A DNA stretch of 64,000 nt from Mobula hypostoma (GCF_963921235.1 NW_026948187.1:1860001-1924000); one strand, 5' to 3'; counted from the first letter of the stretch, positions 29,400-60,737 are shown. Program-made: numbers and translations. Notes: generated from the letters alone by a model not told the origin.

Positions 29400-30310
29400 T
29401 TACTTGTGTTTTTTAAACAATGTTAAAAACAAAGTCCAAGGAGATTTTAACACCAGCCGCACTTCTTCTCTAAACTTAGTCTGGGTCGCTGTATAAATGC
29501 AGGTGTTCGTGCAGGAACTCAGATACATGAGCATGTAGCCGGCTTCAGTGGCGACATAGGCAGAGTTGGTGTAATCACCGTCGTAATGCGCGGTTCCTGT
29601 GAGTCGGGTGGTCAGAAAGCTCACGGCGGCCGTCAGCCACAACAAAATGAAACTGCCGGACACACTAAAGAGTAAAATTATGGATTTCCGGCGGCCTTCC
29701 ATCTCCGGATCCTTCTGTGTTTGACTGCTGTGACCGCGCAGTCCGCGGCGCACTTTACTGGCTAATAAAATGCGCCTCACTGTCAGACAGTTAAACAGGG
29801 TTATCAGAACAAAAGGTAATACAACCGTTAAAATACTCTGCAGAAAGGAGAATGCAACTCCCACAAGAGACGTCATGAACCACGAACTCGGCTGACAGCC
29901 CCACTGAATACCTTTAACTATACCCATAGGTTTATACTCAAATAGAAGCGGAACGCTCTGTAAATGCCCCAGGAGCGCCACGGTTATAATGCCGGCAACA
30001 GCTGTCCTCACTGTGCAATATTTCGTTTTCAGTTTCTGGTAACAGATCGCTACAAACCGATCGACTGTGAACAGGACAGTGTACCATACGGAGGTTAGCA
30101 GGCTGGTCAACATGAAATACAGGACGACCTTACAGGCGGATGTGTAGGACAGGAAGGATTTTGGAAACTGGTACATGATGATATGGTACCCGATTACACA
30201 GAACATCATCACCAGGAGATCTGCCATTGCCATGCCAACCATGTAGAGCGATATACATTTGGAAAGGCCGCAATTCCCTCGGAGGAGCACCACGATTGCA
30301 AATAGGTTCG
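29400..30310 (-). CDS. GPR139/GPR142-like orphan class A GPCR, paralog 1, coding exon 2
   Basis: ANL (TM1 N), MAMADLL (TM2), SVWYTVLFTVDRFVAIC (TM3), LPF (TM5), FILLW (TM6), SSCTNTCIY..Q.KFR (TM7/helix 8). Acceptor ctctttccctAG at 30312-30311, phase 1. AATAAA at 29268-29263. Confidence 0.9.
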
Positions 30311-30489
30311 CTAGGGAAAGAGTCACAAATTGTGAGTTACAAACAGGGCGAGGAGAAGCGTTCTCGGAATCCAATGTGAAAATACCATTCCGACAGTGAT
30401 CGGCAAAATTACCGGGGAAATATGTTCCAAGAGAGAATAAAAAATCTTTATTCAGTGAACTAAAAATGATCGGAGCCGAACTATGCCTT

Positions 30490-30635
30490 TGCTCCTGGTT
30501 AAGTTGCTGGTGACGCGCTCTCAATTTCACCTTGGCGATGTAACCGATAGGGGGCAGCACTGCTCCTGGTTAAGTTGCTGGTGACGTGCTCTCGATGTCA
30601 CCTTGGCGATGTAACCGGGAGGGGGCAGCACTGCT
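30490..30635. repeat. 71-bp tandem duplication in the intron of receptor 1
   Basis: tgctcctggttaagttgctggtgac...caccttggcgatgtaaccg..agggggcagcac occurs twice, period 71. Confidence 0.9.
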
Positions 30636-31231
30636 GCTCATTCGCCATCGCAACCCAGAAAAATAAGGGAGATCACCATCTTCTCCCATACCTCCCTTGC
30701 GCACTACATTCCCTACCCGTGCGACCATCATTTCAATGGTTCTTACCCTTGAAGCTCCATTCAGACACCAGCCGTAGGGAATGAGAGCCGTGACAGAGCT
30801 GAACACAGTAGCTGTAGGATGATCGGCTGATGTGCAGCCGACGGATTCCACTCAAAGTAACTCTCATTATTATTGAGCCGGTACTGGCCCGGAGTAAGTG
30901 GGGTCGTGCCCGCTGTCGGTCACCAGTCCCAGGGTGAAACGGAATCGGACTTCACTGACTCGTCCAGTGCCGCTTGTACACAATCTAGCTTAAACTCGAA
31001 TAGTTTCAGAAACGTCTACCAATAAATAAGCTCTTCCACTTGGATATATCCGCCATTTTTAATCACATTCATTATCATCTTAAAGGTGCGATAGGGAGAA
31101 ATTAATTCAAATCCCCAGCTGGACACCCCCTTCTTGTGGTAGATATATTTACTATAATCCCCAACTGGTACGGGTATGACATATAATCAAATGATTGATC
31201 GGAAATCCACAAAGGGGTATAGGGAAGGAGT

Positions 31232-31536
31232 NNNNNNNNNNNNNNNNNNNNNNNNNNNNNNNNNNNNNNNNNNNNNNNNNNNNNNNNNNNNNNNNNNNNN
31301 NNNNNNNNNNNNNNNNNNNNNNNNNNNNNNNNNNNNNNNNNNNNNNNNNNNNNNNNNNNNNNNNNNNNNNNNNNNNNNNNNNNNNNNNNNNNNNNNNNNN
31401 NNNNNNNNNNNNNNNNNNNNNNNNNNNNNNNNNNNNNNNNNNNNNNNNNNNNNNNNNNNNNNNNNNNNNNNNNNNNNNNNNNNNNNNNNNNNNNNNNNNN
31501 NNNNNNNNNNNNNNNNNNNNNNNNNNNNNNNNNNNN
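31232..31536. other. Assembly gap (N run) inside the intron of receptor 1
   Basis: Run of N. Confidence 1.
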
Positions 31537-31897
31537 GTACAATCCACAATGTTCCCACAATTCGTACTGTTCTACTGCTCCTTCACCAAAAGTTAGGTCA
31601 CAAAATATATTTCAATCGGCAACAATCCGCGGTATCAAATTTACTCTGACAGTGGTCACAGCGGAGAGGATTGATTTCTCTGAATTTCAGCAGCATCGTT
31701 TGCGCTAAACTGTGGAGGGAGTGTAGCGGCAGTGAACTTGATCCTGCATCAGCGCATAGAGCGGAGACGAACCGTTCAGCAGCAGTAGTCTGCCGTGTCT
31801 CCGGGCTGGGCTGGTTTCGCCCATAAACAACACCCAGTGAAATGACTGTTAATAGAGACCGTCCCTAACATTTCAGACAGAGGATGTGTCGACTTAC

Positions 31898-31967
31898 CCG
31901 GAACACCGAAAGCTGCGAGAAAAGGGTAAAATACCATCCTTACTTGCCGGATTGTCGGTAGAGCCAT
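31898..31967 (-). CDS. GPR139-like paralog 1, coding exon 1 (MALPTIRQVRMVFYPFLAAFGVP)
   Basis: 70 nt (23 codons + 1), donor CCGG|GTAAGT; splices in frame to give GVP-ANL; total 326 aa; same length and phase as exon 1 of paralog 2. Confidence 0.85.
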
Positions 31968-32041
31968 TTTCGGGTATTGAACAAAATGTACCGCACTCCT
32001 TGCACGATGCGCCACTCGCCTGAGTTCTGATCTCGCTGCCC

Positions 32042-32135
32042 TTTTATATATTAATCTATTCCCCGGTTAAAAAAAATAACAACAGCAACAAAGGTTGCAC
32101 AACAACTCGAGTTAGTTACAGTCAGTTAACAAACA
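32042..32135 (-). promoter_or_regulatory. Proximal promoter of paralog 1 (TATA box + shared motif)
   Basis: Minus strand: TGTTTGTT 32135-32128, CTGTAACTAA 32121-32112, TATATAAAA 32050-32042, about 75 nt upstream of the ATG. Confidence 0.6.
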
Positions 32136-32699
32136 AGGTGACGTTTCTATTTCTGTATTCTCTCGGCACCACGGGGAATACTTAAAGCTCAGTCCATAAC
32201 ACCGTCTAGTAAAATAGACAATCAGAAACTTTTTAAAGCTGTTCCGCACATTCCGGATTGAAATGTCAGTCATGACCTATCACCTACTTCTATTGTTGCC
32301 TTCACATTCATTTTATTTGATAGTAATTGTAAGATATCTCGCTCCATATCTCACAAAGCAAGTGTTAGCTTTGAGTTAGCTCACGATTTATCCTGAAACC
32401 AATCCCACATTATATGAACATTAAAGCGAGCTTGCACAGTCTGTGTTATTTGCCCGATGTAGTTGTAGACCACACGGATTTCATCACCTTATTCCAACTT
32501 TGTCCACACTTCTTCAGTCACACTGAACTCACCAACCCATTGTGCAGGCGTGATTGACAACGACAGCACGAAATGTATTGAAGTCACTCCTGATTTTTGA
32601 CATTGAAGCGTCAGATTGATCTTGGCGTAGGCTAAAACTGGGCACAACCGAGTGCCTACGATGCCATATTGCTGTACGCATTCTGCGCTCATGTGTTGC

Positions 32700-32990
32700 T
32701 GAAACGTTCAGGCTGTGACCTGTGACCAGGTACCTCCTTACTGATGACAGTAATGCAAAGTGTTCTGCACCTTGAGGGTCCTTAATGATGGATGCCGTCT
32801 TGTTCAGCCATTGCTTTCTGAATATGGTGAGCAGCCTGATGCTATTGCTGGAGATGACTGAATTTAAAACACTTTGTGGCTTTTTTCCGATCTGCTGTAT
32901 TAGTGCCTCCACACCTGACGGGATGCAACAGCCCGCATAGTGTCCAAGGTACACCTGTATGAATGTTCTGGAGGCTTTTGAGACAACATA
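32700..32990 (-). mobile_element. Rex1-like 3' fragment
   Basis: Translation ...WLNKTASIIKDP... parallels the Rex1 C-terminus at 16715-16957. Confidence 0.5.
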
Positions 32991-33959
32991 ACTCTCGTAA
33001 TTGCATTAATTCTTCTTTCCCAATCCATCATCTACAGAGTTGTGGACACACTGGAAATGGAAGCTTCTCGGTCTCTCCACTGCTGACCCATCGATGGAGA
33101 TGTACCTGTTTACAGTTCAAAATTCAAAGTGCATTCATTATCAATGTATACGTTTTCAACATTTAGATTTGTCTCCTTACAAATAACCACACAACAAAGA
33201 AAACCGACAGAACCGACTAAGAAAGAAAACAGTCAAACACCGGATGTGCAGGGTAAAAAAACAAAAGGACCAATGCTGCAAACGATAAACATTCAGAACT
33301 GAAGGTCAGGAAAGTGAGTCCCCAGCCAATCCACCCCCCCCCCTCCACTCCCCCACACCGCAGACAGGAAGCCAGACGTTGCAAGAACCGATTCAAGAAC
33401 ATGTCCTTGCCCCAGTACAAAGCAGTGTCCATCGTCTAGACTGGTCCGTCGATGAAAACGTCCAAACGTCGCATCGTTCCTCGCTTTCGGACCCGGGCTC
33501 TGCTGCTCCGATACTCTCTCGGGTCTGGCCTCACCGCCTCGATTCTGCTCGTTCCCAACTTTCCAATTCGGCCCCACTTCAAAATCGATCTAATCTCGGA
33601 TCTGTCCTCGGTCTCGGGCACGGGACCGGGCTCTGCCTCCCCTCCGCTCGCCTCTGCTCTGACACATCGAATCGCCTTAGTCCGCTCCGGCGATGGCTGT
33701 ACATTGGCTCGTTCTCGGATCTCCGACCCGGACCCCGACGGATTGATTCAGCTTTCAAGGCAGCAGCGTCCAGCGCCTTCGAGCTTTCACTTCACACCGC
33801 AAAAATGCCAGTTCATACAGGCGGTTCAAAAGCTCAACTCCGAATGGGAAGTTAGAGGCTTCTGTTTGCAGCGATCGCTTACAAGAATAAAGTTATTAAT
33901 AACGTATTTAGTAGATCCTGTGGTGTATGTCCCCATGAAACTGTTGTGTCCCCTGCGTG

Positions 33960-34450
33960 ACATCTGAGCAGCTCATTCAGCCATACCGTTTGAAGATGGG
34001 TGATAAAGGGACGTATGCTGCGATCGAACTCCATTATCTTCTGCAAATAGTTGGAATTCCTTACTTGTAAACTCGGGACAGTTATCACAGACGACAGTAT
34101 CAGGGATTCCATGCGTACAAAATGTGTGAAGTGTTTATCGTCGCCCTGTTGGTCGAGGTCTTCACCGTTTTGGCTTCAATCCATTTATAATGCGCATCAA
34201 CGACTACCAATGATTCGTGTCCGCCCAATGGACTGGCGAGTCAAGGTTAAACGGCTCCAAGTTTAGGTCGGCCAGTGCCATGGGACGGGAGCGTTTACAG
34301 TTCGAGACTGCTGGCAGGGGTCGCGTGCACCAAATATGTGCTCGATGTCCGCATCAAGTCTCGCTACCAAACGGAATCCCGCCATTTGGTCGTGTTGGAT
34401 CAACTTTTCTTCGTCCCCAATCTTCTCCCTTCTTTTTATTTTTCCAGACA
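33960..34450 (-). mobile_element. Gypsy LTR-retrotransposon integrase remnant
   Basis: Manual minus-strand translation across frameshifts: CDPCQQ (zinc finger), LVVVDAHYKWIE, HGIPDTVVCDNCPEFTSKEF, YHPSSNGMAE (DDE core). Confidence 0.8.
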
Positions 34451-37174
34451 GGTTTGCCTGATAGATCCATCACTAAGCCACTGTACCATCGCTAGTCAAG
34501 GGCTACATCGCGGCAATGCATCTGCATCTCGTAAGCAGAACATTGTGTAGTTTTCATACTACAGTGCCCAAAATCCATCCTGAAGACTTTGTTTCATTCA
34601 TGGATTCACAATGTAGGGCAGCCATTTGAAACAAAGGTACTTCAATGAAATGAGAAGTTAATACACTTTCTGTACATGCATATTGAGGGTATTAACGAAT
34701 ACAGATGTCAAATGACGTTAATATAAATCAGAGAGACACCTGAGAGCATGATAGTGTTACCAAAAAGATGAGGGTGATACATGTCAGATTTACATTCATT
34801 TCATTCAATGAAGAGAAACTAAAGGAAGGCAATGATGCGGAATGTAAGATGCAACAGGCACCTTACTTTAGCCCCATTGTCCCATGAAATTTTCATAGAA
34901 ATATATTGTTAATGATTCACTGGCACTGACCCGAAGGAAAGACATTTCCACTTTGACACGTATTTGAATAAAATAAGCTTTCTGCAAATGACCTTTTCTA
35001 ACAGCAAGGCAGTAATCGTAGAGGAATCAATAATTACTTATATTAAGAGCGTGCTGATCGTTTTTCAGCATAGCTTCCAGCGTTCAAAATCAGAGGTAAT
35101 CAAGCTGGTGAATTTCTAAAAACCATAATAGTTCAAAAGATATTTTGTCTTTGATATTTTAAAACAAGACATAATCAGCGAATTACAGTGGTATTCTCTA
35201 TTAGATCATAAATCTGAGCTGGATATTGAATGAGGATACAGTCAAGTTACTGGAAACAAAACCGTTTTTTCTTTCTTAATATTATTGAAGGAGACAAATT
35301 AAGTGTGTAGTCTTTAAGGTATTTATTTTTAGGAAGCCACTTATTAAAATAATAACAACTGTTTTCTTTTATGTTGCATGCGGCATCTCTTCCTGAGGTT
35401 TGGTAAAATGAGCTCCGATGTATGTGGGAATTAAAGTTCCGTGCCAGTTGCAGCGTGACAAACGTACAGTCCCTACATTGCCAACTGAAAACAACAACTA
35501 GTTTATCCATGTTTGGAACAGGTGGCAGGTTTCAGAGAGAAAATCCTTCCTGATGCACAGACATCTGATACACTGTTTCTTATTGATGTTTAGGTGGATG
35601 AATTGCTTCTGAATATTCCATGCAGTTATCAAAACTCCTTAGTATTCATTCCTTCCTCTCTCTCTTTGAGTTGCTTGCCCTCTTTCTCCAGGCCCTCACC
35701 TCATTCTTAATCAAAAGAGAAGAATGGCCCCAAATCCCTGTCATATCTGGGATAAACTGGTTTCTGCATAAATAAAAGACAAAACACAGGTACACCAATA
35801 CCTGTGCACTAGCCCAAGTCTAAGAATTTAAGAAACAAACAAACCCCTGCGACATCCTATTCACAGCAAGCAGAAATCAATCAACAGCTTTGAGACTCCT
35901 CAGGACCGACTTTCCTTTTCAAAACTGTACAGATATTTCAAAATATCCTTATGTGCAATGGTAATCATAGAATCTGTCATTCCTTTAGACAGCTCTACCG
36001 ATACAAAAGTTCAATTCTTTCATCATTGTGATACGTGTCTATACAGTGTTGTGATGCATTCCTATTTATCCCAAACAACTTGCAGTGGTAACACGACACC
36101 TTTTAGCACAGCAGGCTATCTTGAAATACTCATACATTTTTTTGAAAAACTCAGGTTAGTTGAGACTACGCTGAGAGATTTGATTTATTTCTGATTGGTG
36201 AACTGGAAATCCACAAAGTTTCGGTTGTTTCTAATATTTACACTTGGGCAGTGTACAGGGAATGATGTGCCAAACCACTAAGCTTTTGGTTTGACTTCAA
36301 GGTTTCTGCAGGCACAAGTTTCTCCCAGATATGGGGGACGGGGGCGTGGACAAACAGGTATTCTCTTTGTATGCAGATTGGGCAGACAGCATAGAGAGAA
36401 GGACAAGCTGTTTGATGAGACAGGAAGCTGCGGGGGACACTGAGGGAATTCTCTTGGAAGAAGGGCTCTCATACACAAAATCTTCAGGAGCAATTCTCTG
36501 AAACTCAGTAAGAGAACAATCTACCAGGCGTTAGTGGTTCAGTAAAGACGCTCTCGCTCAAGACTGTCACCTTCTGCAGCCGTAATTAGAAGCTCAAACC
36601 TGAAGAGACAATGCACTGGTTGTCACTTCCCTAAGTGAGAGTCTCCAATGCCAGAGAAACAAGAATGGAATTCGTGAATAGCTTTGTGCAAGCTTCTTCA
36701 CTGCGCAGGGTGATCAGACCACAACCTGCAGATACCACATTAAAGCTCTAGATATCTACCTGGCAACCACAAACCCCTTGCTTAATGGTATCAGTCTATG
36801 GCATATAAGAGGCTAGGGACCCCGATCTTGGTGTAACTTGAGAAAAAGGAATAAACACCCTCTTGGTGGCAAGACAGTGCGTGACCAATCAGTGAATTGA
36901 CACAAATCAATGCTGGTGCCTGGAGCTGTCGAAGATGCTTGTGTTCTGTAATGGTCTGCTGCAGTCTGCAGCTGAACCACCACAATTATCCAAAAAGCAG
37001 TTAAGGGAGTTTAAGGGTTAATGCCTACAACATGGTCTGCAACACAGGGATTCCTGCACACACAAATGCCACGTGGTTACCAGACAAAATTGTAAAAGAG
37101 CTAAGAACTGTTCAGCTGCAACAAAGATTCTACAACTTACACCACCCAGGAGGAGCTCTGCAGTACACAGCAGA

Positions 37175-37440
37175 AGAAAAAGGGGGAAAGTTTAAGGGGA
37201 TCATGAAGGGAAACTTTTTCACACAGAGGGCTGTGAGAGTGGGGAACGAACTGCCAGCACAGGAGGTACATGCAAGCTCAATTTGAGTATTTAAGGGAAG
37301 TTTGGATAGGTACATGGATGGTAGGAGTATGGAGGGCTATGGTCCTGGTACATTCGATGGGAGTAGGCAGTTTAAATTTTTCGGCCCCTCTAGATGGGCT
37401 GAAGGGTCTGTTTCTGTGCTGTATTTTGATGGTTCTATGG
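37175..37440 (+). mobile_element. CR1 3' end fragment
   Basis: GNFFTQRAV..NELP followed by a CR1-type 3' UTR. Confidence 0.8.
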
Positions 37441-37532
37441 CTCTAATTCCGCTGTGTGCCGCACAGGCTTCCTTTTGCAGGGGCTCTGCTTTTGTTAACC
37501 AGCTCCGTGTCAAGCAGCTAGACGCTCAGAAA

Positions 37533-37534
<2 letters not shown>

Positions 37535-37572
<38 letters not shown>

Positions 37573-37588
37573 CGGGGGGGGGGGGGGT
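37535..37588. repeat. (GT)n microsatellite followed by poly-G
   Basis: Seen directly. Confidence 0.95.
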
Positions 37589-38084
37589 GGCGTGGTTTCA
37601 GAAGCAAAAGGGAACAAGATGAAAGAGAAAAAGTAGCGGCATGCCTGCCCAGGTTGAATGTTCGCCCAATTACAGTACCAATTCATCCAACTGCAGCAGG
37701 AAAACACATCCTAATTCACTGTTCTGCAAAAATGTATTTAGCTGCAACATGAAATACAAGACAACACAAAATAAATATTCCAAACCGGTTTTATCAATCC
37801 AATCTTGGCAAGTGGAATAAGAACATTTTTGCACCCTTAGTGTCTTTACCTAAGAAGATGGCGACAGAATGGCTCCATTGGTCAGCTGGGGGAGACAAAG
37901 GCCAACAACACAAGTTAGTCTCCAAAAAATTTCACTTACTTATCCAAAGATTGTTAAGAAGGTAGAAATCAAACTTGCCATGAGAGGAGGAGTCTTCAGT
38001 AAACAATACAGAAACACTGACGTGGAGACTGAGTAGAGTTTGTGAAGAAGGAAATACATTTGTCTGCTGATCGAGACACTCCCT

Positions 38085-38435
38085 TTCCCTTATTAAGGAA
38101 AGAGAGAACCTGTGGTATGTCGAAGACTGGGTGAAACTCGAAGTGTTTGGGGTAATTTCAAGTCTGTGTCTTTGCTATTGCTTTGCTCACACTTGTCTGC
38201 TTGGTGGCGGTGCCGATGCTTGTTTTTTGTCGGTGGCGGGAGGGGGGATTATTTCTTGCAACCGCTTTTGCACAGCAGGGGGGAGCTGGGGGTGGGGACT
38301 TGGGCGTTCTTATGTTTACCTGTCATTCATTCTTTGGGGCACTTTGTTTGGGTGGATGTTTGCGAACACAAAACATTTCAGGATGTATATTGTACACATT
38401 TCTCTGACATTAAATTGGACCTTTGAACCTTTGAT
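38085..38435 (+). mobile_element. Non-autonomous retroposon / LINE 3' UTR fragment
   Basis: Homolog of 15285-15645; ends attaaa...acctttgaacctttga. Confidence 0.6.
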
Positions 38436-39837: not shown

Positions 39838-40938
39838 TGCAAATACGAGGAAATCTGCAGATGCTGGAAATTCAAGCAACAGGCAAGGTAGCATCTACAG
39901 AAAGCAGCACAGTCGAAAGTTTCGGGCCGACAACCTTCGTCGGGAAAAGCTGAAAGAAAAGATAGTGAAAGATTTGAAGGAGGGAGAGGGAGGGGAAGAT
40001 CCGAAATGATAGGAGAAGACAGGAGGGGAAGGGGATAAAGCTAAGAGCTGGGAAAAGGGATACCGGACTAGAGAAGGGAGAGGAGACAGGAGGCCTAGGG
40101 AGAAAGAAAGCGGGAGGGGAGCCCCGGAGGAAGATGGAGAGCAGGCAAGCAGCTATTTAGAGNNNNNNNNNNNNNNNNNNNNNNNNNNNNNNNNNNNNNN
40201 NNNNNNNNNNNNNNNNNNNNNNNNNNNNNNNNNNNNNNNNNNNNNNNNNNNNNNNNNNNNNNNNNNNNNNNNNNNNNNNNNNNNNNNNNNNNNNNNNNNN
40301 NNNNNNNNNNNNNNNNNNNNNNNNNNNNNNNNNNNNNNNNNNNNNNNNNNNAGGGGAGGTGGGGCATTAATGGAAGTTGGAGAAGTCAATGTTCATGCCA
40401 TCAGGTTGGAGGCTACCCAGACGAAATTTAAGGTGTTGTTCCTCCAACCTGAGTGTAGCCTCATCTTGACAGTAGAGGAGGTTGTGACAGTCATATCAGA
40501 ATGAGAATGGGACGTGGAATTAAAATATATGGCCACTGGGAGATCCTACTTTCTCTGGAGGACAGAACGTAGGTGTCCAGCAAAAGGACCTCCCAGTCTG
40601 CGTCGGGTCTCACCAATATACAGAAGGCTGCATCGGGAGCACCCCACCACCAAGCACACCTTACCCTCCCCAGCGCCCCCCCCCCCACTCTCTCTGCTTT
40701 CCGCAGGGATCGATCCTTACGCGACACCCTTTTCCATTTGTTCCCGCCCACCCACATCCCTTCCCACCGATCTCCCTCCCGGCGCTTATCTTTGTAAGCG
40801 GAACAAGTGCTTCACCTGCCCTTTCACTTCCTCCCTCACCACCATTCAGGGCCCCAGACAGTCCTTCCACGTGAGGCGACACTTCATCTGAGAGTCAACT
40901 GATGAGATTTACTGCGTCCGGTGTTCCCAGGGCGGCCG
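39838..40938 (-). mobile_element. Penelope-like element with inverted 5' segment; spans the gap at 40163-40351
   Basis: Minus part to about 40642 encodes CSRCSLLYIGETRRRL. Plus part 40645-40938 encodes SAFRRDRSLRDTL, CKRNKCFTCP and IYCVRC. Terminal repeat at 39838-39950. Confidence 0.8.
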
Positions 40939-41030
40939 ATTCGTGTGCTTGGCCAGTCCACGTGTCTCGTCCCGTCCTTGTGCCCCGCCCAGCCCAGGAG
41001 TACCTCACCCAGCCCGGTTAGAAGCCATAG

Positions 41031-44000
41031 AAACCAGAGAAACTACAGCACAGAAACAGGCCTTTTGGCCCTTCTTGGCTGTGCCGAACCATTTTCTGCC
41101 TAGTCCCACTGATCTGCACATGGACCATATCCCTCCATACACCTCCCATCCATGTAGCTGTCCAATTTATTCTTAAATGTTAAAAAAGAACCCGCATTTA
41201 CCACCTCGTCTGGCAGCTCATTCCATACTCCCACCACTCTCTGTGTGAAGAAGTCCCCCCTAATGTTCCCTTTAAACTTTTCCCCCCTCACCCTTAACCC
41301 ATGTCCTCTATTTTTTTTCTCCCCTTGCCTCACTGGAAAAAGCCTGCTTGCATTCACGCTATCTATACCCATCATAATTTTACATACCTCTATCAAATCT
41401 CCCCTCATTCTTCTACGCTCCATGGAATAAAGTCCTAATGTATTCAACCTTTCTCTGTAACTGAGTTTCTCAAGTCCCGGCAACATCCTTGTAAACCTTC
41501 TCTGCACTCTTTCAACCTTATTAATATCCTTCCTGTAATTTGGTGACCAAAACTGAACACAATACTCCAGATTCGGCCTCACCAATGCCTTATACAACCT
41601 CATCATAACATTCGAGCTCTTATACTCAATACTTTGATTAATAAAGGCCAATGTACCAAAAGCTGTCTTTACGACCCTATCTACCTGTGACGCTACTTTT
41701 AGGGACTTTGTATCTGTATTCCCAGATCCCTCTGTTCCACTGTACTCCTCGGTGCCTTACCATTAACCCTGTATGTTCTACCTTGGTTTCTCCTTCCAAC
41801 GTGCAATACCTCACACTTGTCTGTATTAAACTTCATCTGCCATTTTTCAGCCCATTTTACAGCTGGTCCAAGTCCCTCTGCAGGCTCTGAAAACCTTCCT
41901 CACTGTCTACTACATCTCCAATCTTTGTATCATCAGCAAATTTGCTGATCCAATTTACCACATTATCATCCAGATCATTGATATAGATGACAAATAGCAA
42001 TGGACTCAGCACTGATCCCTGTGGCACACCACTAGTCACAGGCCTCCATTCGGAGAAGCAATTCTCTACTACCACTCTTTGACTTCTTCCATTGAGCCAA
42101 TGTCTAATCCAATTTACCACCTCTCCATGTATACCTAGCGAGTGAATTTTCCTAACTAACCTCCCATGCGGGACCTTGTCAAAGGCCTTACTGAAATCCA
42201 TGTAGATAATATCCACTGCTTTCCCTTCATCCACTTTCCTGGTAACCTCCTCGTAAAACTCCGATAGATTGGTCAAACATGACCTACCACGCACAAAGCC
42301 ATGTTGACTCTTCCTAATAAGTCCCTGTCTATCCAAATGCCTGTAGATTCTGTCTCTTAGTACTCCCTCCAATAACTTACCTACTACCGACGTTAAACTT
42401 ACTGGCCCATAATTTCCCGGATTAATTTTCGATTCTTTCTTAAACAACGGGACAACATGAGCTACTCTCCAATCCTCCGGCACCTCACCTGTAGACAACG
42501 ACATCTTAAATATTTCTGCCAGAGCCCCTGAAATTTCAACACTAGTCTCCTTCAAGGTCCGAGGAACACCCTGTCAGGTTCCGGGGATTTATCCACTTTA
42601 ATTTTCCTCAAGACAGCAAGGACCTCCTCCTTTCCGATCTGTACAGTTTCCATGATCTCACTACTTGTTTCCCTTAATTCTATAGACTTCATACCACTTT
42701 CCTTAGTAAATACAGACGCAAAAAAAGTATTTAAGATCTCCCCCATTTCCTTTGGTTCCGCACATAGCCGACCACTCTGATCTTCAAGAGGACCAATTTT
42801 ATACCTTACAATCCTTTTGCTCTTAATATACCTGTACAAGCTCTTTGGATTATCCTTCACTTTGACTGCCAAGGTAGCCTCATGTCTTCTTTTAGCCCTC
42901 CTGATTTCTTTCTTATGAATTTTCTTGCATTTCTTATACTCCTCAAACACCTTATTTACTCCCTGCTTCCTATACATGTCATACAACTCCCTCTTCTTCT
43001 TTATGAGAGTTGCAATATCCCTTGAGAACCAAGGTTCCTTATTCCTATTCACAATGCCTTTAATCCTGACAGGAACATACAAATTCTGCACTCTCAAAAT
43101 TTCTCCTTTGAAGGCTTCCCACTTATCGATCACATCCTTGCCAGAGAACAACCTGTCCCAATCCACGCTTTTTAGATCCTTTCTCATTTCCTCAAATTTG
43201 GCCTTCTTCCAGTTAAGAACCTCAACCCTAGGACCAGATCTATCCTTGTCCATGATCAAGTTGAAACGTTTCCTAACAGGAGATCCAATATTGCATTCCA
43301 TCCAGTTGGTCCCTCTATATATTGATTTAGAAAACTTTCCTGAACACATTTTACAAACTCTAAACGATCTAGACCCCTAACAGTATAGGAGTCCCAATCA
43401 ATTTATGGAAAACTAAAATCCCCTACCACCACAACTTTATGTTTCCTGCAGTTGCCTGCTATCTCTCTGCTGATTTGCTCTTCCAATTCTCGTTGACTAC
43501 TGGGTGGTCTGTAATACAATCCCACTAATGTGGCGATATCTTTCCTGTTTCTCAGCTCCACCCATAAGCACTCAGTAGACAAGCCCTCTAATCTGTCCTG
43601 CCTGAGCACTGCTGTAAGATTTTCCCTAACAAGCAATGCTACTCCCCCACCTTTCACTCATCTGCCTCGATCACATCTGAAACATCGGAACCCTGGAATA
43701 TTAAGCTGCCAGCTCTGCCCTTCCTGTAGCCAAGTTTCACTAATTGCTATAACGTCATAATTCCACGTGTCAATCCACGCCCTCAACTCATCCGCCTTCC
43801 CCGTAATACTCCTAGCATTGAAATATATACACCTCAGAAAATGTTTACCACCACTCACAACCTTTCTATTAGTAGATTTGCTTGAACTGTTAACATCATT
43901 TACTTTCACCCCAGCCACACTGTCAGCTCTGGCACTCTGGTTCCCATCCCCCTGCAAATCTAGTTTAAAGCCTCCCCAATAGCACTAACAAACCTCCCTG

Positions 44001-45158: not shown

Positions 45159-45168
45159 GAAACCATAG

Positions 45169-45525: not shown

Positions 45526-45696
45526 AGTGATTAAGTTTCGAAGCAACCAATTACAACTACCAACTAAAATGTAATGAAGTGTGTATCCATTAGAAACACA
45601 AAGTTAATAAAAGGACAAGATACAATTTTTGATACTGAGTAATATGATAAAAATGAACGTTACCGCTTGAATGTGTCTATGTTGACTTTTATAATT

Positions 45697-46524: not shown

Positions 46525-46776
46525 TATTTGTAATTTAGGTAGAGTCATTTACGATTTCACTCTGAAACAGCATAATAATCAGAACACTCTTCATTTAAGC
46601 AGATGTTAAGAATTCATTAGACATAACTCGTGTGCTTTCACCATATTATCTATAATGTCTACTTGAACCATAAATTGGCATTTTGAACATTTACTTACAT
46701 ACATTTATAGATAAACATTATTGAAGTCATCTTTAACATGTATACAGTGTTCATGGAGATGAACTTGTTGCTGATT

Positions 46777-48189
46777 TTATCTTGATGCACCAATGTTTTT
46801 ATATTGACACAAGAGAAGATGTTTGAAGGTTTTCTTGAAGGTAGCATTGCATAGTGAATAGCAGGCTGGGTTGATAGTACTGTTGATGTAACAGAGCCAG
46901 TATCCAATAGTCCATACTTTGTTAGGGACGCAGACTAAACAGAAAGTGTTAATGAGTACCATGACATTGTATGGGGTCCAGGTGATGATAAATGCCAGCA
47001 GAATAGCCAGGATGGTCCTGGCCACCTTCTTCTCCCGGGTAACAGATCCCTTCTTTTTCTTAGCAGGAGTCTTTGTCATCTTAATAATCTTGTGGGCTGC
47101 GGTGAGCTCTCTGTCTTTACTATTTTTGGTGCTGTTATCTGACACTATTTCAACTGTGGTAGCGCAGAGGTCACTCTTTTGGCATTTAGTGACAACCTTT
47201 ATGCTGGAGAGATTGGAGCTGCCGATGCTAAAATGCCTTCGTGCGGTGGAGACCTTTGTGCTCTCATCAATCGTTCCTTCCTCCTCCTGGATGGAAGGGA
47301 CCACACTGAGGGAAGTCGAGTCATTGGAGATCTCCTTTTTCTCTCCTTGGCCACAATTATCCATCATTACTTCCCCAGCTGCCTTGCCGTTTTGTACTTT
47401 GAAATTCTGCAACCCATCAGGTGCACTGGAAAAGTTGTTGTTACTCGGTTTCATTATTTTGCCCCGCAGTAGACTGGGAGAAATGGTGTCTTTGTTTGAC
47501 TCGGGCTCTTTCTTATCCTTCTTGATCCGACTCTGGCTAGCACGGGATATTTGCACATACAAAATAGTCATGGTAATAACCGGTAGATAGAAAGATGCTA
47601 TTGCAGTGCCAAAAGTGACAAATGGATTTGAGAAGAACTGTACATGGCACTCACCCTCTTTAACTGTCCGCCCACCTACAATGAACTGCCAGAAGAGAAT
47701 AGCAGGAGCCCACAGGATAAATGACAGCACCCAAGCAGCTGCAATCATCATCCCTGCCATCTTGCTGGTTCTCTTCGCAGGGTAGCTGAGAGGCTTTATC
47801 ACACAGAAGAATCGGTCAAAGCTGATGATAAGAAGGTTCATGACAGATGCATTACTTGCAACATAATCTAGAGCCAGCCATAAATCACACATCACTGGGC
47901 CCATGGGCCAGTAGCCAATGACGATGTAAGTAGTGTAAAGGTTCATTGAGAACACACCAATAATCAAGTCAGCACAGGCTAAGCTGGAAATGAAATAATT
48001 GTTAATTGTTTGTAACTGTCTGTTTACTTTAATAGAAAGCATAACCAGAATGTTTCCGATAATGGTCACCAGACTCAAAGATAATGCTGAAATCACAATG
48101 AAGATTACTCCAACTGTTTTGTAAGCGCTTCCTCTTTCAATGTCTGTTAGGTTGCTGAGAGATGCATTTGCCTGTGTTGAATTAGCCAT
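46777..48189 (-). CDS. CHRM2: Muscarinic acetylcholine receptor M2(-like), single coding exon, 470 aa
   Basis: [45 protein letters not shown], long ICL3, [21 protein letters not shown] and an M2-type C-terminus [20 protein letters not shown]. Three N-terminal N-glycosylation sequons. Pyrimidine tract and CAG acceptor lie 20 nt upstream of ATG 48189. Confidence 0.93.
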
Positions 48190-48959
48190 CCTTTCCCTTT
48201 GAGTTAGCACTGAAACGGACTAAACGCAGAAAATAAGAGAAAAGAGGAGAAAATATTAGCAAACAAGCATTAAAGGATTTCTTATTGAAGTCTCACCATC
48301 AAGAACACACAAGACCATAGGTTGTAAAAAAAAACAAAACTTCAAGATTGTTGCTGAGAGATTAATTTGAACAGGAAGCACAGAGATCACTTGTTGTACG
48401 TACAACTAATTATGAATTAATAGTTAATTACGAGTGCCTAACTGAATGAAGGTGTTGATGCCCGACATTGGAAACATGTTTTCATTACATTGGTCCACCT
48501 TTATGCACTGAAAATGATGGGAAACCTCTGATTTCTTGGTTCCCTTCAATGCACGTGCTTTGAAAGCAAAAGCTGTATGAACACGAGACATCCCAATTGC
48601 CTACAGAAATGACGCAAGAAAAACAGATACACATAATTATCCCTCTCCCAAAGGAGGAACAACCATAAAATCCAATAAACTTGCAGTCAAAAGCAGAAAT
48701 GAAGCAAAGTCCAGGAGGGAGAGAAGAATCTGGGACTGAGTTACGTCGGATCAACAGCATGTGTTTCAAAACAGAATGCTAAGAACCATATTAGTGATGG
48801 CCGAACACTATTGATTTACCCTAGTTATGAAACCCATGAGAACTCTAAACAATTATGGTCTAATATTCTTGAAACTAATAGCCTAAAAGGGGAAGTTATG
48901 ACCTGCAGAAAAAAAGATTGGTGACACCGGAAGCCAAGTGACAGCAATATCCCTGTGGG

Positions 48960-51900
48960 CAGGTTTGCTGGAGCTGTGGAGGAGGGTTTAAACTAATTAG
49001 GCAGGGAGGATGGGAACTGGAATGATTGGTCTGAAGACGAGGCAGTTGGTATACAAGTAGATGCAGTGTGTAGTGAGACTGTGAGGAATGACAGGCAGGT
49101 GATAGAGCAAAGTTGCAGAGACTAGGATGAGTTGAAATCTAACATAGTGGCAGAATCGAAGAGGGTAAGGAATACATGTCCGAAGGTGTCATATTTTAAT
49201 GCACACTGTACAGTATATGGAATAAGGTAGAGGTCAGAGATTGCAATTATGACATTGTGGGCATCGTGGCTGAAAGAAAATCATAGTTGGGAGATTTACA
49301 TCAAAAGATACATTGTATCGAAAGGACAGAGAGGTAGGCGGGGGTGGCGGGGTGGAGAGGATTTGTTAGTAAAAAGTGAAATCAAATCCTTAGAAATCGG
49401 AAACATTGGATTGGAAGATGGAGTATCCTTGCGGGTAGAGTTAAGAAACTGCAGGGGTAAAAAGCCCCTGATGGGAATTCTATCCAGACATTCGAACAGT
49501 GGCCTAGAGATGGGGTACAAATTACAACAGGAGACAGAAGCGGCATATAAAAATTGAAATGTTACAATAGTCATGGGGGATTTCAATATGCAGGTAGATT
49601 GAGAAATTTAGGTTGGTGCCGAACCCCAACAGATGGAATTTGTAGAAAGCGTACAAGTCGGGTTACTACAACCGCTTGCGGTTGAGGACACCAGGCGAAA
49701 GGCAATTCTGGATTGAGTGTTGTGTTATGAACCCGATTTCATTAGCGACTTTAAGGTAAAGAAACCCTTTTAGGAGGCAGTTATCATAATATGTTAAATC
49801 CACCCTGCAGTTTGGGAGGGAGAAGATGAAGTCAGATATATTAGGATTTCAGTGGATAAAAAGGGGTTACTGTAACTGAATCATGAGAGAGGAGCTGGCC
49901 AAATTTAATTGGTAAGGGACAGTACCAGGGATGAAAGCAGAACAGCAATGGTTGGTGCTTCGTGGAGGAATTCAGAAGGCGCAGGATGGATACATATCCA
50001 AGTATTCTAAAGGGAGGATAAGGTAACAGTGGCTGACAAGGGAAGTCAAAGACAGCATAGAGGGAAAAGAGAGAACAAATAATACAACGAAAATTGTGGG
50101 AAAATTGGGAAACTTTTGAAAACTAACAAAAGGGAACTGAAAATTCATAAAGAGGGAAACGATGAAATATAAACATAAGTTGGCCAATAATATGATGATA
50201 CCAAAACTATTTTTTTTCAGAAATATTAAAAGTAAAGGATATCGGACCACTGAAAGATTATGCTGGAGACATAGTAATGGGGGAAAATAAATGGCATACA
50301 AACTTAATACCTATTTTGTGTCTGTCTTCACTGTGGAACACACCAGGAATATGCCAAAAATCCAGAAGTACTGGGGGCAGAAGTGAGTGTTGTTGCTATT
50401 ACCAAGGAGAAGGTGCTTTGGAGGCTGAAAAATTGAATGTTAGATAAGTCAGCTGGACCAGATGGACTACACTCTCGGGCTCTGAAAGAGGTAGGAGCGG
50501 AGGTTGTGAAGGCATTGACAATAAACTGGACTGGTCAACGAACACTGAGGCTGTCTACAAGAAGGGTCAGAGCCGTCTCTATTTCCTGAGGAGACTGAGG
50601 TCCTTTAACATCTGCCGGACGATGCTGAGGATGTTCTACGAGTCTGTGGTGGCCAGTGCTATCATGTTTGCTGTTGTGTGCTGGGGCAGCAGGCTGAGGG
50701 TAGCAGACACCAATAGAATCAACAAACTCACTCGTAAGGCCAGTGATGTTGTGGGGATGGAACTGGACTCTCTCACGGTGGTGTCTGAAAAGAGGATGCT
50801 GTCTAAGATTCATGCCATCTTGGACAATGTCTCCCATCCACTACATAATGTACTGGTTGGGCACACGATTACATTCAGCCAGAGACTCATTCCACCGAGA
50901 TGCAGCACTGAGCGTCATAGGAAGTCATTCCTGCCTGTGGCCATCAAAACTTACAACTCCTCCCTTGGAGGGTCAGACACCCTGAGCCAATAGGCTGGTC
51001 CTGGACTTATTTCATAATTAACTGGCATAATTTACATATTACTATTTAACTATCTATGTTTTTTTTACTATTTATTATTTATGGTGCAACTGTAACGAAA
51101 ACCAATTTTCTCTGGGATCAATAAAGTATGACTATGACTATGACTATGAAGGCATTAGTCATGATCCTTCAAGAATCATTAGGTTCTAGAATGGCTCTGG
51201 AAGATTGGAAAAATGTAAATATCATTCTACAGTTTCAGGGAAGGAGGCAAAAGAAAGAGAATTATAAGCTAATTATTTCTGACTTCAGTTGTTGGGAAGG
51301 TGTTGGAGACATTATTAAGGATATGGTTATGATGTAGTTGTAGGCACATGATGAAGCAGGCAAAGTCAGAGTGGTTTCACTCAGGGGAAATCATGCCGAA
51401 AAAATCTGCTGGAATTCTTTGAGGAAATAACAAGCACGATGGACAACAGAAAATCAGTGGATGTCGATTAGTTGGATTTTCAGAAGGACTTTGACAAGGT
51501 GCCGCACGTGAGTATACTTAACAAATTAAGAGCCCATGGCATTACAGGAAAGATACTAGCATAGATTGAACGTTGGAAAACTGGCAGAAGAGAAGGAGTG
51601 AGAATAAGGGGCCTTTTCTGGTTTGCCACAGTCAATTAGTAGTGTTCCACAGGGGCCTTTGTCGGAGCCGATTCTTTTCGCGTTATATGTCAATGATTTG
51701 GATGACTGAATTGATGACTTTATGGCAAGTTTCAGGATTACACAACAAGGGTTGGAGGGGCAGGTAGAGTTGAGGAAGCAAGGTATCTGCAGGATGCTGA
51801 GACAGACTGGGAGAATGGGCAGATGGAATATAGTGTAGGGAAGTGTATATATAGTCAGGCACTTTGGTAGAAGGATTAAAGGCATAGACTATTTTCTAAA

Positions 51901-52310
51901 TGGAGAGAAAATTTAACAATCAGATGTGCAAAGGGACTTCGAATTCCTTGCTCAGGATTATCTAAAGGTTAACTTGAAGGCTGAGTCTGTGGTCACTTTC
52001 ATTTCAAGAGAGCTAGAATATAAGAGCACATATGCAATCCAGGGGCATTATAACCATTGGTCAGACCACACTTTGAGCACTGTGAGCAAATTTGTGTCCC
52101 TTATCTAAGCAAAGATGTACTGGCATTGGAGAGGGTCTAGAGAGGTTCATGGGAATAAAAGTGTTAATCTATGAGGAGCATTTGATGGCTCTGGGCCTGT
52201 ACTCACTTGAGTTTAGAAGATTGAAGGAGGATCTCATTGAAGCCTATCGAATGTTAAACAGCCTAGAGAGAGAGGATTTGGAGAGGATGTTTCTTATAGT
52301 GGGAGAGACT
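48960..52310 (+). mobile_element. Degenerate CR1 related to family 'B', interrupted by Rex1
   Basis: Colinear with 23220-27000 (VMGDFN, DKSAGPDG, FDKVPH remnants); many stops. Confidence 0.85.
50517..51146 (+). mobile_element. Rex1/Babar 5'-truncated insertion
   Basis: MLRMFYESVVASAIMFAVVCWG...HPLH...KSFLP; tail (TATGAC)n; 10-bp TSD TGAAGGCATT at 50507-50516 and 51147-51156. Confidence 0.9.
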
Positions 52311-52368
52311 ATTTTTAATTAGTTTCCTGTCTGCCCAATTATTTGCAGCTTGAAACAATTCTTCTCAC

Positions 52369-53262
52369 TGTTACGTACCCAGTAACTGGGTTGCCAAACC
52401 AGCAGAAATGGATCACTCAGTTGGAGTCTGGATTACTGGAACTAAGAAAGTTTTATTAAAGAAATAAGCAACACAGTACCCTAAACAAAAGGATAATAAA
52501 TACAACAGTTCAGCAATGATAAACATACATGTACACCGAACTAGGATAATAGGATCAATCAAGCTCTATCGTCGTCTGGGGGTAAATGACCAGTTTCAAA
52601 GTGACAGAGTTCAGTTTAGTTCAGTTCGCAGTAACCACCGTCACTGTGGGAGAGAGAGAGAGAGAGAGAGACAGGATGAATATTCAAATCGGATTCCAAA
52701 CAGACCTTCGATATTCCTCACAGTCAGCTTTAGGGCGAGCCCCTTGTAATGTCTTCTGAGGTCACCGACTGTGACCCCTCCGTTTCAGATACGATCGTTC
52801 TTCCGCAGTGAACCCAGCACCCATGGAAGCGTGGACACACACACCAGGTTCCCGCCGATCCGTACCTTTCTACCCTGTGTGTCTCTGGCTGGTCCCGCGA
52901 CCAGACCTCAACAACTCCCACCGACTTGTGGGAGGCGCACCGCTTCCAGGGTCTCGTTACATCGTGGTGTTGTGTGTGTCTTGCCTTAGCGAACCTGTCC
53001 CTTTTTATCCCCCTGCTGAGGTATCGCCTGTCCATCACACATCAAACAGTTCAGGGTTCAAACAGTAGCCGATCTGGACAGTTCTCAGACCTGTGTCTCC
53101 TTCCGTTAAGCTCTCTCGTCTCTTCATTAACATTTCCAAATGCTGCTCCATTGTCTTCCTTATTTCTCTTTCTCCTGAAGTCAGGTGCCAGATCAACTGT
53201 TGATCCCACTGGTGCCGGCACAGGACAGTTAACATCTTAGTCTATGTGTACTTTTTGTAACC
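52369..53262 (-). mobile_element. Solo LTR
   Basis: Inverted termini TGTTAC...GTAAC, minus-strand AATAAA near 52455, no coding capacity, abrupt boundaries. Confidence 0.6.
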
Positions 53263-53865
53263 CTCTTTCGTCACATCAGTTTCGTTTGACCTCTGACAGG
53301 TTTCAGATATTTATACATTTATATTCCATCAGCAAAATTACAAAATGCTGGTTGAACTCAGCAGAGATTTGCCAGAACATTGTGTTGTTGTTTTGGATTT
53401 CCAGCGTCTGTAGATGTTTTCGTGTTTATGTACATCAGCAACGTGTCCATTTGTCCGTTGCTAACACGATGTTGATCTGTCTATTGTACCTCTGTTCGTA
53501 TTTGTGTTTCTGTGTGTGTATTTGTGTGTGTATGTGTGGGTCTATGTGTGGGTCTATGTGTGTGCGCATGCTTGTGTTTGGCCAGGAACGTGTTGAAGCA
53601 CTGAAGGGCAGTTCAAAATGGGAAACCGCAGAGGCAGAGGTTCGGTCGGGTGGTGTGGGTGCACTTCGTTCACAGATGTACAATTAGCCAACTAAACCAG
53701 GAAATCTGTAAATGTGGCTGCTCCGTGATGAAGTCAGTCTTTGTCATTAGAGCTCCCGTATTGTTTTAACTAGATGAATCACTGCTGAGGCAATGCCCAA
53801 GACTTTTGGCGTATTGTCTTCAATCGGCCGGATACTTACATCAGAAACAATGGTTTTGATTAAAG

Positions 53866-53944
53866 TGTTTGTTCAAGTAGCTGTAACTAAGAAGGTTAGT
53901 CAGGGATGCAAGAATATCTCAGGAGACCGCTACTTTGTATAAAT
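53866..53944 (+). promoter_or_regulatory. Proximal promoter of paralog 2 (shared motif + TATA box)
   Basis: TGTTTGTT 53866-53873, CTGTAACTAA 53881-53890, TATAAAT 53938-53944, about 85 nt upstream of the ATG. Confidence 0.6.
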
Positions 53945-54028
53945 CAGCGCCGTTTTGACGAAATCAGCTCAAAGTGTCTGCCCGAGCTGTGGGTTCGGGA
54001 GTAACAGAATTCATACATTCTCACTGAA

Positions 54029-54098
54029 ATGGATTATCCTCTCATCTGTCAGATAGAATTCGTCTACTATCCTTTTATTTCAGCCTTTGGAATTCCCG
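54029..54098 (+). CDS. GPR139-like paralog 2, coding exon 1 (MDYPLICQIEFVYYPFISAFGIP)
   Basis: 70 nt, donor CCCG|GTAGGC, phase 1, in frame with exon 2. Not shown in the ORF track. Confidence 0.88.
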
Positions 54099-54457
54099 GT
54101 AGGCCGCAGTGTCAGCTGCCGTTGGTGGGAATTGAAGGTTAATTATAATATTGTGATCACTCCTGTCGCTGGTGTCCACTGTCACCTGTCCAGTCCCGGT
54201 GTTCTGCATTTCAGGGATAGAATGGAAACACCGGGAATGTGTATTCTGGGATCCGGATCGAAAAAAACTACTGCGGGAATTTAGCGAATCGGCCAACATT
54301 TGTGGAATTGAACGGGTTAGGCAGCGTTCTTCCAGCTGTTTGTGTTCAACAATGTGATGTTCAGGTTTCTGTGCTTTTGGTCTTGTAGCTGCTGCCCTGT
54401 ATTTGCGAATATTGGGTTTACACAGCCCGCTGAGATTAAACGAATTGATTGTCTGCA

Positions 54458-54552
54458 ACACACATCAAATTTGCTGGTGAACGCAGCAGGCCAGGCAGCA
54501 TCTCTAGGAAGAGGTACAGTCGACGTTTCAGGCCGAGACCCTTCGTCAGGAC
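54458..54552 (-). mobile_element. 95-bp Penelope terminal-repeat insertion in the intron of paralog 2
   Basis: 13-bp TSD TTGATTGTCTGCA at 54445-54457 and 54553-54565; near-identical to parts of 9436-9583. Confidence 0.9.
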
Positions 54553-54553
54553 T
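54518..54553 (-). ncRNA. Minimal hammerhead ribozyme motif (antisense to the GPCR pre-mRNA)
   Basis: Minus strand AGTC-CTGACGA-A-GGGTCTCGGCCT-GAAA-CGTC-GACT. Confidence 0.7.
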
Positions 54554-54684
54554 TGATTGTCTGCAGTTGTATTTAAACGGATGTTTGAGTTAGGTGTAAC
54601 AATAAAACTATCTTTTGGTAGTAAAAATTTGGCAAATGTAAGGAGTTATTTTTCTCAACTTGCTGTTCCCTCTCTCTCATCCAG

Positions 54685-55583
54685 CGAACTTGGTGGCGAT
54701 TGTGATTCTGTCCCGGGGAATGTGCGGTCTCTCCAAATGTGTCACTCGTTACCTGGTGGGAATGGCAGTGGCCGATCTCCTGGTCGTTATCTCGGATCCG
54801 CTGCTGAGGTGGACTGCATCGTTTTATTTTCCCCGATCATTCCTTTTCATCACTCCTGTGTGCAGTCTCAGTGGATGGCTGGTTTTCGCGAACACAGCGA
54901 CCTCTGTCTGGCTGACTGTCGCTTTCACCGTCGATCGATTTGTAGCTATTTGCTGTGAGAAGCTGAAAACAAAATATTGCACCGAGAGAACGGCGGCTGT
55001 GGTTATCGGGACAGTGAGTGTGCTCACCTGTTTGGGCAGTGTCCCGTGGGGATTTACATACGAGCCTATGGTACCAATTGATAATGTTCCCTGGTATTGC
55101 GGTCTTACATCGAGTTTCGAAAACTCTCCCGCATGGGCCGCATTTGCAATGTTTCACCGCATTTTAACCCCTTGTGCCCCATTTTTTCTGATTTTGCTGT
55201 TCAATATACTGACTCTCAGGCGAATTCTAGCAACCAGTCGATCCCGTAAGGAGCTCCGGAGACAAAAGAGTGGAGAGAATGATAAGGATCGGGAGATGGA
55301 GAACCGTCGCAAATCCATCATTTTGCTCTTCAGTATATCCGGTAGTTTCATATTGTTGTGGGGAACACAGGTGGTATTTAATATCTATCAACGGATTTCA
55401 ATGAGTTTTGTTTATTCTGTTACGGATCCCCGTTACCTCGCAGATGAGGTTTCAGCGATGCTGCAGGTTTTCAGTTCCTGCACCAATACTTGTATTTACG
55501 GACTGACTCAGAGCAAATTCCGAGAGGAACTAAAGAATGCGGTGAAATACCCATTGGATCTGATTTTTTCTGAACAGAGCTAG
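54685..55583 (+). CDS. GPR139/GPR142-like orphan class A GPCR, paralog 2, coding exon 2 (total 322 aa)
   Basis: Acceptor tctctctcatccAG; ANLVAIVIL, MAVADLL, SVWLTVAFTVDRFVAIC, APF, FILLW, SSCTNTCIY..QSKFREE; AATAAA at 55663-55668. Confidence 0.9.
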
Positions 55584-60721: not shown

Positions 60722-60737
60722 CGTGGCCATTTCGCTC

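Follow-up and report, generated by a model that had tools for sequence, protein, structure and literature searches.

A stretch of 64,000 nucleotides of the Mobula hypostoma genome (GCF_963921235.1 NW_026948187.1:1860001-1924000; referred to below as the window, with positions counted from its first letter) contains two receptor genes, here called gene A and gene B. Both are probably (we would put it at roughly 0.6) functional members of a clade of GPCRs (G-protein-coupled receptors) of class A, elasmobranch-specific and massively duplicated, which derives from one GPR139/GPR142-related gene and combines a shared transducer with diverse ligands and a chemosensory type of use. An earlier note on this DNA, made from the sequence alone, had described the pair as GPR139-like orphan receptors of a chondrichthyan-expanded family with the divergence pattern of a chemoreceptor repertoire.

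A receptor family greatly expanded in sharks, rays and skates

A database search with gene B (clustering at 90% identity, E ≤ 1e-3) returned 2357 clusters, and the 120 that scored best were all from sharks, rays or skates; the gene A search gave a second list of 120 that was largely different from the first. Among 1.84 billion representatives at 50% identity, 112 clusters matched at E ≤ 1e-30. Approximately 270 named members were checked and every one was elasmobranch (sharks, rays, skates); no chimaera member was present among these named proteins, in a search that was not aimed at chimaeras. The proposal of an expanded family is therefore upheld on a very large scale, while the label 'chondrichthyan' is wider than the members seen, all of which come from sharks, rays or skates.

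A sample of 240 proteins included at least 22 distinct M. hypostoma, 66 Heterodontus and 57 Heptranchias proteins, and the first of these figures contradicts a family of one to three members per genome, the outcome that the earlier note had named as speaking against its own proposal. In a species-labelled tree of 233 proteins, clades restricted to a single species comprised 26 (Heptranchias), 25 (Heterodontus) and 10 (Pristiophorus) members, and batoid-only clades comprised 24 (with gene B) and 15 (with gene A). Runs of consecutive accessions in catshark and bamboo shark suggest tandem arrays in those two animals. Family members have already been predicted and named in public annotation, and the kind is a familiar one, a class A GPCR expanded in one lineage; no paper describing the elasmobranch expansion was found in the literature searched. 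The automatic names include GPR139, GPR15-like, GPR182-like, allatostatin-A receptor-like, FMRFamide receptor-like, vasopressin V2-like and ACKR3-like, and because they vary so widely none of them can be regarded as a real orthology call.

The cytoplasmic face is conserved and the ligand pocket is diversified

Helix limits were taken from the structural model of the gene B product together with the x.50 anchor residues, and 32 canonical (generic) pocket positions were defined. The overall identity of A and B is 49-50%. They agree at 112 of 169 cytoplasmic-side positions (66%) but at 48 of 148 extracellular-side positions (32%), a difference with a Fisher p of 1.9e-9, and the two proteins match at only 8 of the 32 pocket positions (25%). 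This strong asymmetry is what the earlier note had reported; its description of the extracellular halves as barely alignable was too strong, as the alignment of A and B contains only three gaps.

The same polarity is evident across the family. Mean column entropy is 1.87 bits on the extracellular side versus 1.03 bits on the cytoplasmic side (ratio 1.81, p 2.5e-16). In 21 orthologues of the closest amphibian relative, which is single-copy and is described below, the order is reversed, with 0.41 bits on the extracellular versus 0.74 bits on the cytoplasmic side (ratio 0.56, p 6e-5). Family pocket positions average 2.19 bits, compared with 1.72 bits at other outer-helix positions (p 0.004), and the most variable of them (3.32, 3.37, 7.39, 6.51 and 3.33) each exceed 3 bits. 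The amphibian pocket, by comparison, averages 0.11 bits and is invariant at 27 of 32 positions. The combination of a conserved G-protein face with a hypervariable pocket, as originally claimed, is thus borne out with the amphibian relative as an opposite control, and the excess of pocket variability, whose absence would have told against the claim, was looked for and found family-wide. Moreover, within young lineage-only or species-only clades the ratio of outer to inner entropy is 1.7-2.9 (all p ≤ 5e-4), and outer-half diversification is therefore continuing.

The two pockets in the window differ in character. That of gene A is hydrophobic and aromatic (L/M/L at 3.29-3.33, F6.55, Y7.39 and Y7.43), whereas that of gene B is polar and charged (D2.57, R2.61, H5.42, R5.43, Q6.51, N6.55 and D7.35), and this suggests chemically different ligands for A and B.

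If these observations are taken together, a single GPR139/GPR142-related ancestor gene, surviving in conserved form in amphibians and sturgeon, would have been amplified in elasmobranchs. The cytoplasmic surface, comprising intracellular loop 1 (ICL1), the DRF/ICL2 segment, the inner part of transmembrane helix (TM) 6 and the junction of TM7 with helix 8, would have been held constant, and since this same surface is kept, one common G protein or arrestin partner is most likely. As the residues of the orthosteric pocket have almost fully diverged, different members should bind different ligands. From these sequence comparisons we infer, with good support, a repertoire that would share one transducer and recognise many ligands. 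The most likely use of such a set would be to detect a multitude of small molecules or peptides, either external or variable, as a chemosensory-type repertoire does.

Receptor motifs and class membership

In both genes a first coding exon of 70 nt is followed by a phase-1 intron that interrupts the codon immediately before N1.50, in TM1. As approximately 24 residues precede N1.50, the extracellular N-terminus amounts to only a few residues in A and B, and it has no N-x-S/T sequon. These features had been listed for both genes in the earlier note and were confirmed, as were the DRF motif, the FILLW segment lacking the TM6 proline and the NTCIY motif, all of which the family shows as a rule. In a set of 169 of its proteins, DRF occupies the DRY position in 156, LWxT without a proline at 6.50 is found at 6.47-6.50 in nearly all, and NTCIY is present in 119, with NPCIY in only 15. 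The four cytoplasmic segments that had been singled out as nearly invariant between the two genes, namely RGxCGLSKC in ICL1, DRFVAICxxKLKTKYCTxRTA, RRKSIILLFSxSGSFILLW and TQxKFREE, are each at least 90% conserved across the family.

The core residues D2.50, R3.50, C3.25, the cysteine of extracellular loop 2 and W6.48 (D30, R84, C59, C138 and W225 when numbered along exon 2) show at least 90% conservation or do not vary at all, and nearly all members retain them. This conservation of microswitches argues for folded, signalling receptors. Membership of class A is indicated for A and B by their Pfam 7tm_1 matches and core microswitches, and for gene B also by a seven-helix model; the class A proline kinks P6.50 (of CWxP) and P7.50 (of NPxxY) are lacking in the family. 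The absence of P7.50 extends to GPR139 and to the amphibian relatives and is a trait of the wider clade, while the loss of P6.50 is seen in the elasmobranch family and one coelacanth protein.

Structure of gene A

Gene A lies on the minus strand. Its exon 1 (31967-31898) comprises 70 nt from the ATG, encodes the short N-terminus together with TM1's outer half, and is followed by a GTAAGT donor at 31897; it was found by tblastn with exon 1 of gene B (48% identity, E 3.6e-4). The phase-1 intron (31897-30311) ends in a CCCTAG acceptor, and exon 2 (30310-29400) runs from N1.50 to a TAA stop, encoding the rest of TM1 through to helix 8. The product is 326 aa long and matches Pfam 7tm_1 at 8.6e-23.

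An assembly gap (31232-31536) falls wholly within the intron, and so no reading frame crosses it. The exons lie in the same orientation on either side of the gap, the 23 residues of exon 1 resemble the N-termini of the nearest paralogues (P0121 and P0122), and the nearest M. birostris gene spans 2586 bp compared with 2568 bp for gene A. These three points support, though they do not prove, the assignment of both exons to one gene. No identical protein was present in a collection of 15 billion proteins, in which the best matches were 87% (M. birostris) and 85% (M. hypostoma) identical. Gene A therefore appears to be unannotated and absent from the protein set, possibly as a consequence of the gap in its intron.

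Structure of gene B

Gene B lies on the plus strand, with a 70-nt exon 1 at 54029-54098 (donor GTAGGC), a phase-1 intron at 54099-54684 and an exon 2 at 54685-55583 that extends from N1.50 to a TAG stop. The 322-aa product matches Pfam 7tm_1 at 1.3e-24, and TM1-7 and helix 8 are all visible in its AlphaFold model (mean predicted local distance difference test score, pLDDT, 85.6; predicted template modelling score, pTM, 0.81). Exon 2 is 100% identical to the M. hypostoma protein XP_062895475.1 (P0001), which bears the name 'probable G-protein coupled receptor 139'. The NCBI model of that protein uses an alternative first exon at 53568-53652 on the same strand, whose 28-residue N-terminal product is hydrophilic and replaces the outer half of TM1. 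Exon 54029-54098 is taken as the true one because it fits the family consensus N-terminus, in which [FY]YP occurs within the first 30 residues in 110 of 167 proteins, and the NCBI first exon is probably a mis-prediction.

The gene B intron carries a highly repeated element of approximately 100 bp (54455-54553), the summed contig depth of which reaches 1e5-1e6 in two public runs of related organisms and a few thousand in two others; its behaviour is that of a short interspersed repeat of very high abundance. Two close relatives of gene B were also observed. P0416 (XP_062895487.1, M. hypostoma), a second copy with 98.3% identity, lies on the same 7.46-Mb scaffold outside the window and reflects either a duplication in the assembly or one that happened very recently. 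P0415 (XP_072132575.1, M. birostris) is 91% identical, is named 'atypical chemokine receptor 3-like' and has a Cys at the otherwise nearly invariant W6.48; this counterpart may be losing function.

Relatives of the family

When a single family sequence was compared with human GPR139 by phmmer the match (2.5e-8) was no better than that to LPAR6. A profile of 99 members searched against all PDB chains placed GPR139 first (1.5e-20, 76.6 bits), followed by AT2R (2e-14, 56.6 bits), with an identity to human GPR139 of approximately 25% in the profile alignment. The human and zebrafish sequences of true GPR139, a gene with two exons, share 70% identity (PMC7318219). The description 'GPR139-like' is therefore apt in that no solved receptor lies nearer to the family profile than GPR139; at approximately 25% identity and with hundreds of copies, A and B are not orthologues of GPR139 or GPR142, and neither the high conservation nor the one gene per genome expected of a GPR139 orthologue was found. 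In a Foldseek search of Swiss-Prot models every match was a generic class A receptor of the peptide or chemokine type (GPR15, galanin, somatostatin and MCH), and the search did not discriminate.

The phylogenetic tree was built without canonical GPR139 and GPR142, relative to which the group is placed solely by the profile search. No canonical GPR139 or GPR142 occurred among the 150 best cluster representatives, and the 'probable GPR139' proteins of anchovy, salamander and coelacanth, considered as candidates for the canonical receptor, turned out to be otherwise. The elasmobranch clade is supported at 97 by the SH-aLRT (Shimodaira-Hasegawa-like approximate likelihood ratio test) and is sister (96) to a clade of amphibian and sturgeon proteins. 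Genes A and B belong to separate deep subfamilies, both with shark and ray members. They therefore parted before sharks and rays diverged; the difference between them is in large part old, and they are not a recently diverged pair.

The amphibian relative occurs in salamanders, frogs and caecilians and is 32-33% identical to the shark members and 66-74% identical among amphibian orders, and the sturgeon protein (P0410) is 46% identical to that of salamander. Further out, coelacanth and teleost proteins (P0355, P0365, P0375 and P0379) form two clades just outside the elasmobranch and amphibian clade. The amphibian gene (P0341, P0391-P0409) and sturgeon P0410, which constitute the closest outgroup of the elasmobranch expansion, are themselves mislabelled 'probable GPR139'.

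On a wider scale, GPR139 and GPR142 are the deuterostome sister group of the protostome RFamide, Wamide and myosuppressin peptide receptors (PMC7617803), and both respond to aromatic amino acids (PMC7318219). Given this peptide-receptor descent and this amino acid response, amino acids or small peptides are reasonable first guesses for the ligands of the family.

Layout of the window

A tblastn search of the 64-kb window with gene B matched only genes A and B. The two are arranged head to head, approximately 22 kb apart, and flank the conserved single-copy gene CHRM2; they are dispersed members of different subfamilies and form neither a tandem pair nor an array. The CHRM2 orthologue (muscarinic M2; 46777-48189, minus strand) is intronless and intact with its ATG located, matches human M2 in the PDB over its full length (phmmer, 1e-213) and Pfam 7tm_1 at 1.1e-62, and is a neighbour of the two genes that does not belong to the family.

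The DNA from gene A to CHRM2 contains a reverse transcriptase fragment of a long interspersed nuclear element (LINE)-type retrotransposon (41100-43349, minus strand; Pfam RVT_1, 3.3e-28), which adjoins an assembly gap at 40163-40351 within intergenic repeat DNA. A scaffold join at this gap is therefore what links gene A to CHRM2 and gene B; in M. birostris, the counterparts closest to the two genes share one 112-Mb chromosome. Retrotransposon fragments, both LINE-type and gag-bearing (RVT_1, endonuclease and Retrotrans_gag), occur at 1683-2498, 22335-27250, 41100-43349 and 59894-60745 and occupy much of the intergenic space. A minisatellite at 61531-63768 consists of approximately 70 copies of a 32-bp GC-rich unit with 97% matches, which accounts for the overlapping long open reading frames (ORFs) in several frames there, and is followed by a 37-bp array at 63770-63946. 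The other long ORFs of the window, considered as further family copies, are retrotransposon pieces, CHRM2 or minisatellite frames.

Counter-evidence and alternative explanations

Several observations weigh against a functional, chemosensory-type repertoire. Prolines 6.50 and 7.50 are both absent, which is unusual for an activatable class A receptor. The excess of pocket variability over other outer-TM sites is only a trend in four of the five young clades and is significant in only one. Diversifying selection and relaxed constraint on the outer half are indistinguishable short of codon-level dN/dS (the ratio of non-synonymous to synonymous substitution rates), and A and B are too diverged for a usable dS. 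As regards expression, no run recorded as RNA in the public-run searches contains gene A or B, and runs guessed to be RNA under the same species label contained no gene A words. Contigs of four runs were aligned to gene B and gave no exon 1-exon 2 splice joint; they consist of the intron repeat at 54455-54553 and short paralogue-like pieces that are 90-97% alike on conserved segments, some running into non-matching flanks or crossing an intron-exon border. These contigs are neither evidence of expression nor proof of silence. Finally, GPCRs are missing from the 50 transcripts that a catshark study found most specific to its library of brain and olfactory epithelium (PMC11979771); this evidence is weak, since receptors expressed in scattered cells never reach high abundance.

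The most serious alternative is an internal one, in which the proteins would be receptors for diversified endogenous peptides or immune chemoattractants in neurons or leukocytes, in the manner of chemokine, formyl-peptide and Mas-related receptors. The kinship of GPR139 and GPR142 with protostome peptide receptors (PMC7617803) fits such a role, as do the peptide and chemokine receptors that follow GPR139 among the profile matches in the PDB and lead the Foldseek matches, and the catshark study without an olfactory GPCR signal of this kind (PMC11979771). It would, however, call for a matching expanded family of ligands, of which none is known and none was seen in the window; the species-only clades of 25-26 genes imply a turnover faster than is usual for endogenous ligand-receptor pairs; and an N-terminus of approximately 4-8 residues is, from general knowledge, atypical of chemokine and large-peptide receptors. 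On balance we consider internal signalling unlikely, although it has to be taken seriously. It is far less probable that A and B are leftovers, that is, chance ORFs drifting without function in a repeat-rich region, with the outer variability a sign of lost constraint. The retrotransposon-filled surroundings, the lack of an annotated protein for gene A, the W6.48 to C change in the M. birostris counterpart of gene B and the lack of RNA are all compatible with decay of this kind. The two ORFs are nevertheless complete and their splice sites are good, the cytoplasmic sides of A and B have remained 66% identical for all their age, and neutral drift would not keep the cytoplasmic motifs near-invariant in 169 proteins across lineages that predate the shark-ray split. 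There is next to no room for the view embodied in the database name, that A and/or B are the ray GPR139 and/or GPR142, which is already contradicted. GPR139 is indeed the best solved profile match (1.5e-20), has two exons (PMC7318219) and shares the lack of proline 7.50; set against this are the 70% identity of the true human and zebrafish GPR139 compared with approximately 25% (E 2.5e-8) here, the hundreds of copies, the inconsistency of the automatic names and the existence of closer non-elasmobranch relatives that are themselves not GPR139.

A functional elasmobranch repertoire with a shared transducer and diverse ligands is thus the reading that we favour. The sensory role, taken on its own, is a guess to which we would give somewhat less than an even chance. 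The suggestion that the family constitutes an undescribed major class of elasmobranch chemosensory GPCRs, amplified from one GPR139-related gene and with A and B as differently tuned members, is offered tentatively and is rather doubtful.

Significance

The published chemoreceptor repertoire of elasmobranchs is small and dominated by V2Rs, with very few odorant receptors, trace amine-associated receptors (TAARs) and V1Rs and a single T2R (PMC6368271, PMC10116579, PMC10691231). Hundreds of class A receptors with a hypervariable pocket would be an obvious candidate for the missing elasmobranch chemoreceptors; if not chemosensory, the family would indicate a signalling system that is diversified and as yet unexplored. 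The relative in amphibians, single-copy and with an invariant pocket, is tractable and a good deorphanisation target for the ancestral class of ligand, and this would in turn matter for the ongoing debate on what GPR139 and GPR142 bind. As regards annotation, the name 'probable GPR139' is misleading for this family.

Comparison with known receptor systems

The family resembles GPR139 and GPR142 in the TM1 signature YY..L..G.PAN..T..IL, in the lack of proline 7.50 (NFFLY in GPR139, NTCIY in the family), and in the two exons, short loops and class A fold. It differs from GPR139 in having DRF rather than DRY, in the loss of proline 6.50, which GPR139 keeps as LWAP, and in C3.25, where the aligned GPR139 residue is Asp; and it differs from both receptors in its hundreds of copies with a hypervariable pocket, as opposed to one copy.

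With the amphibian and sturgeon gene (for example P0341 and P0394) the family has in common KLK..YCT.RTA in ICL2, DPE..R.KS..LL before TM6 and SS..N.CIY..T..FREE at TM7/helix 8, and the N-terminus is about equally short. However, only one protein per species was retrieved for that gene, which keeps DRY and proline 6.50 (HWLP), and in amphibians its extracellular side is more conserved than the cytoplasmic side and its pocket is near-invariant. An Ensembl survey described sets of GPR139/142-related orphans in coelacanth, gar and teleosts, two of them named GPR210A and GPR210B and a third unnamed (PMC6504862). These are likewise non-mammalian relatives of GPR139 and GPR142; they differ in being small gene sets, and the survey covered no elasmobranch genomes (PMC6504862).

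In its manner of evolution the family can be compared with vertebrate chemoreceptor repertoires that arose from ordinary class A receptors, namely the TAARs (from aminergic receptors), the odorant receptors, the vomeronasal formyl-peptide receptors and the Mas-related receptors, with which it shares birth-and-death expansion, lineage-specific clades, a conserved transducer face with a variable pocket and a compact coding region. Those repertoires are defined by expression in sensory cells, whereas the elasmobranch family is known here from its genes, and in place of a tandem array A and B stand on either side of CHRM2.

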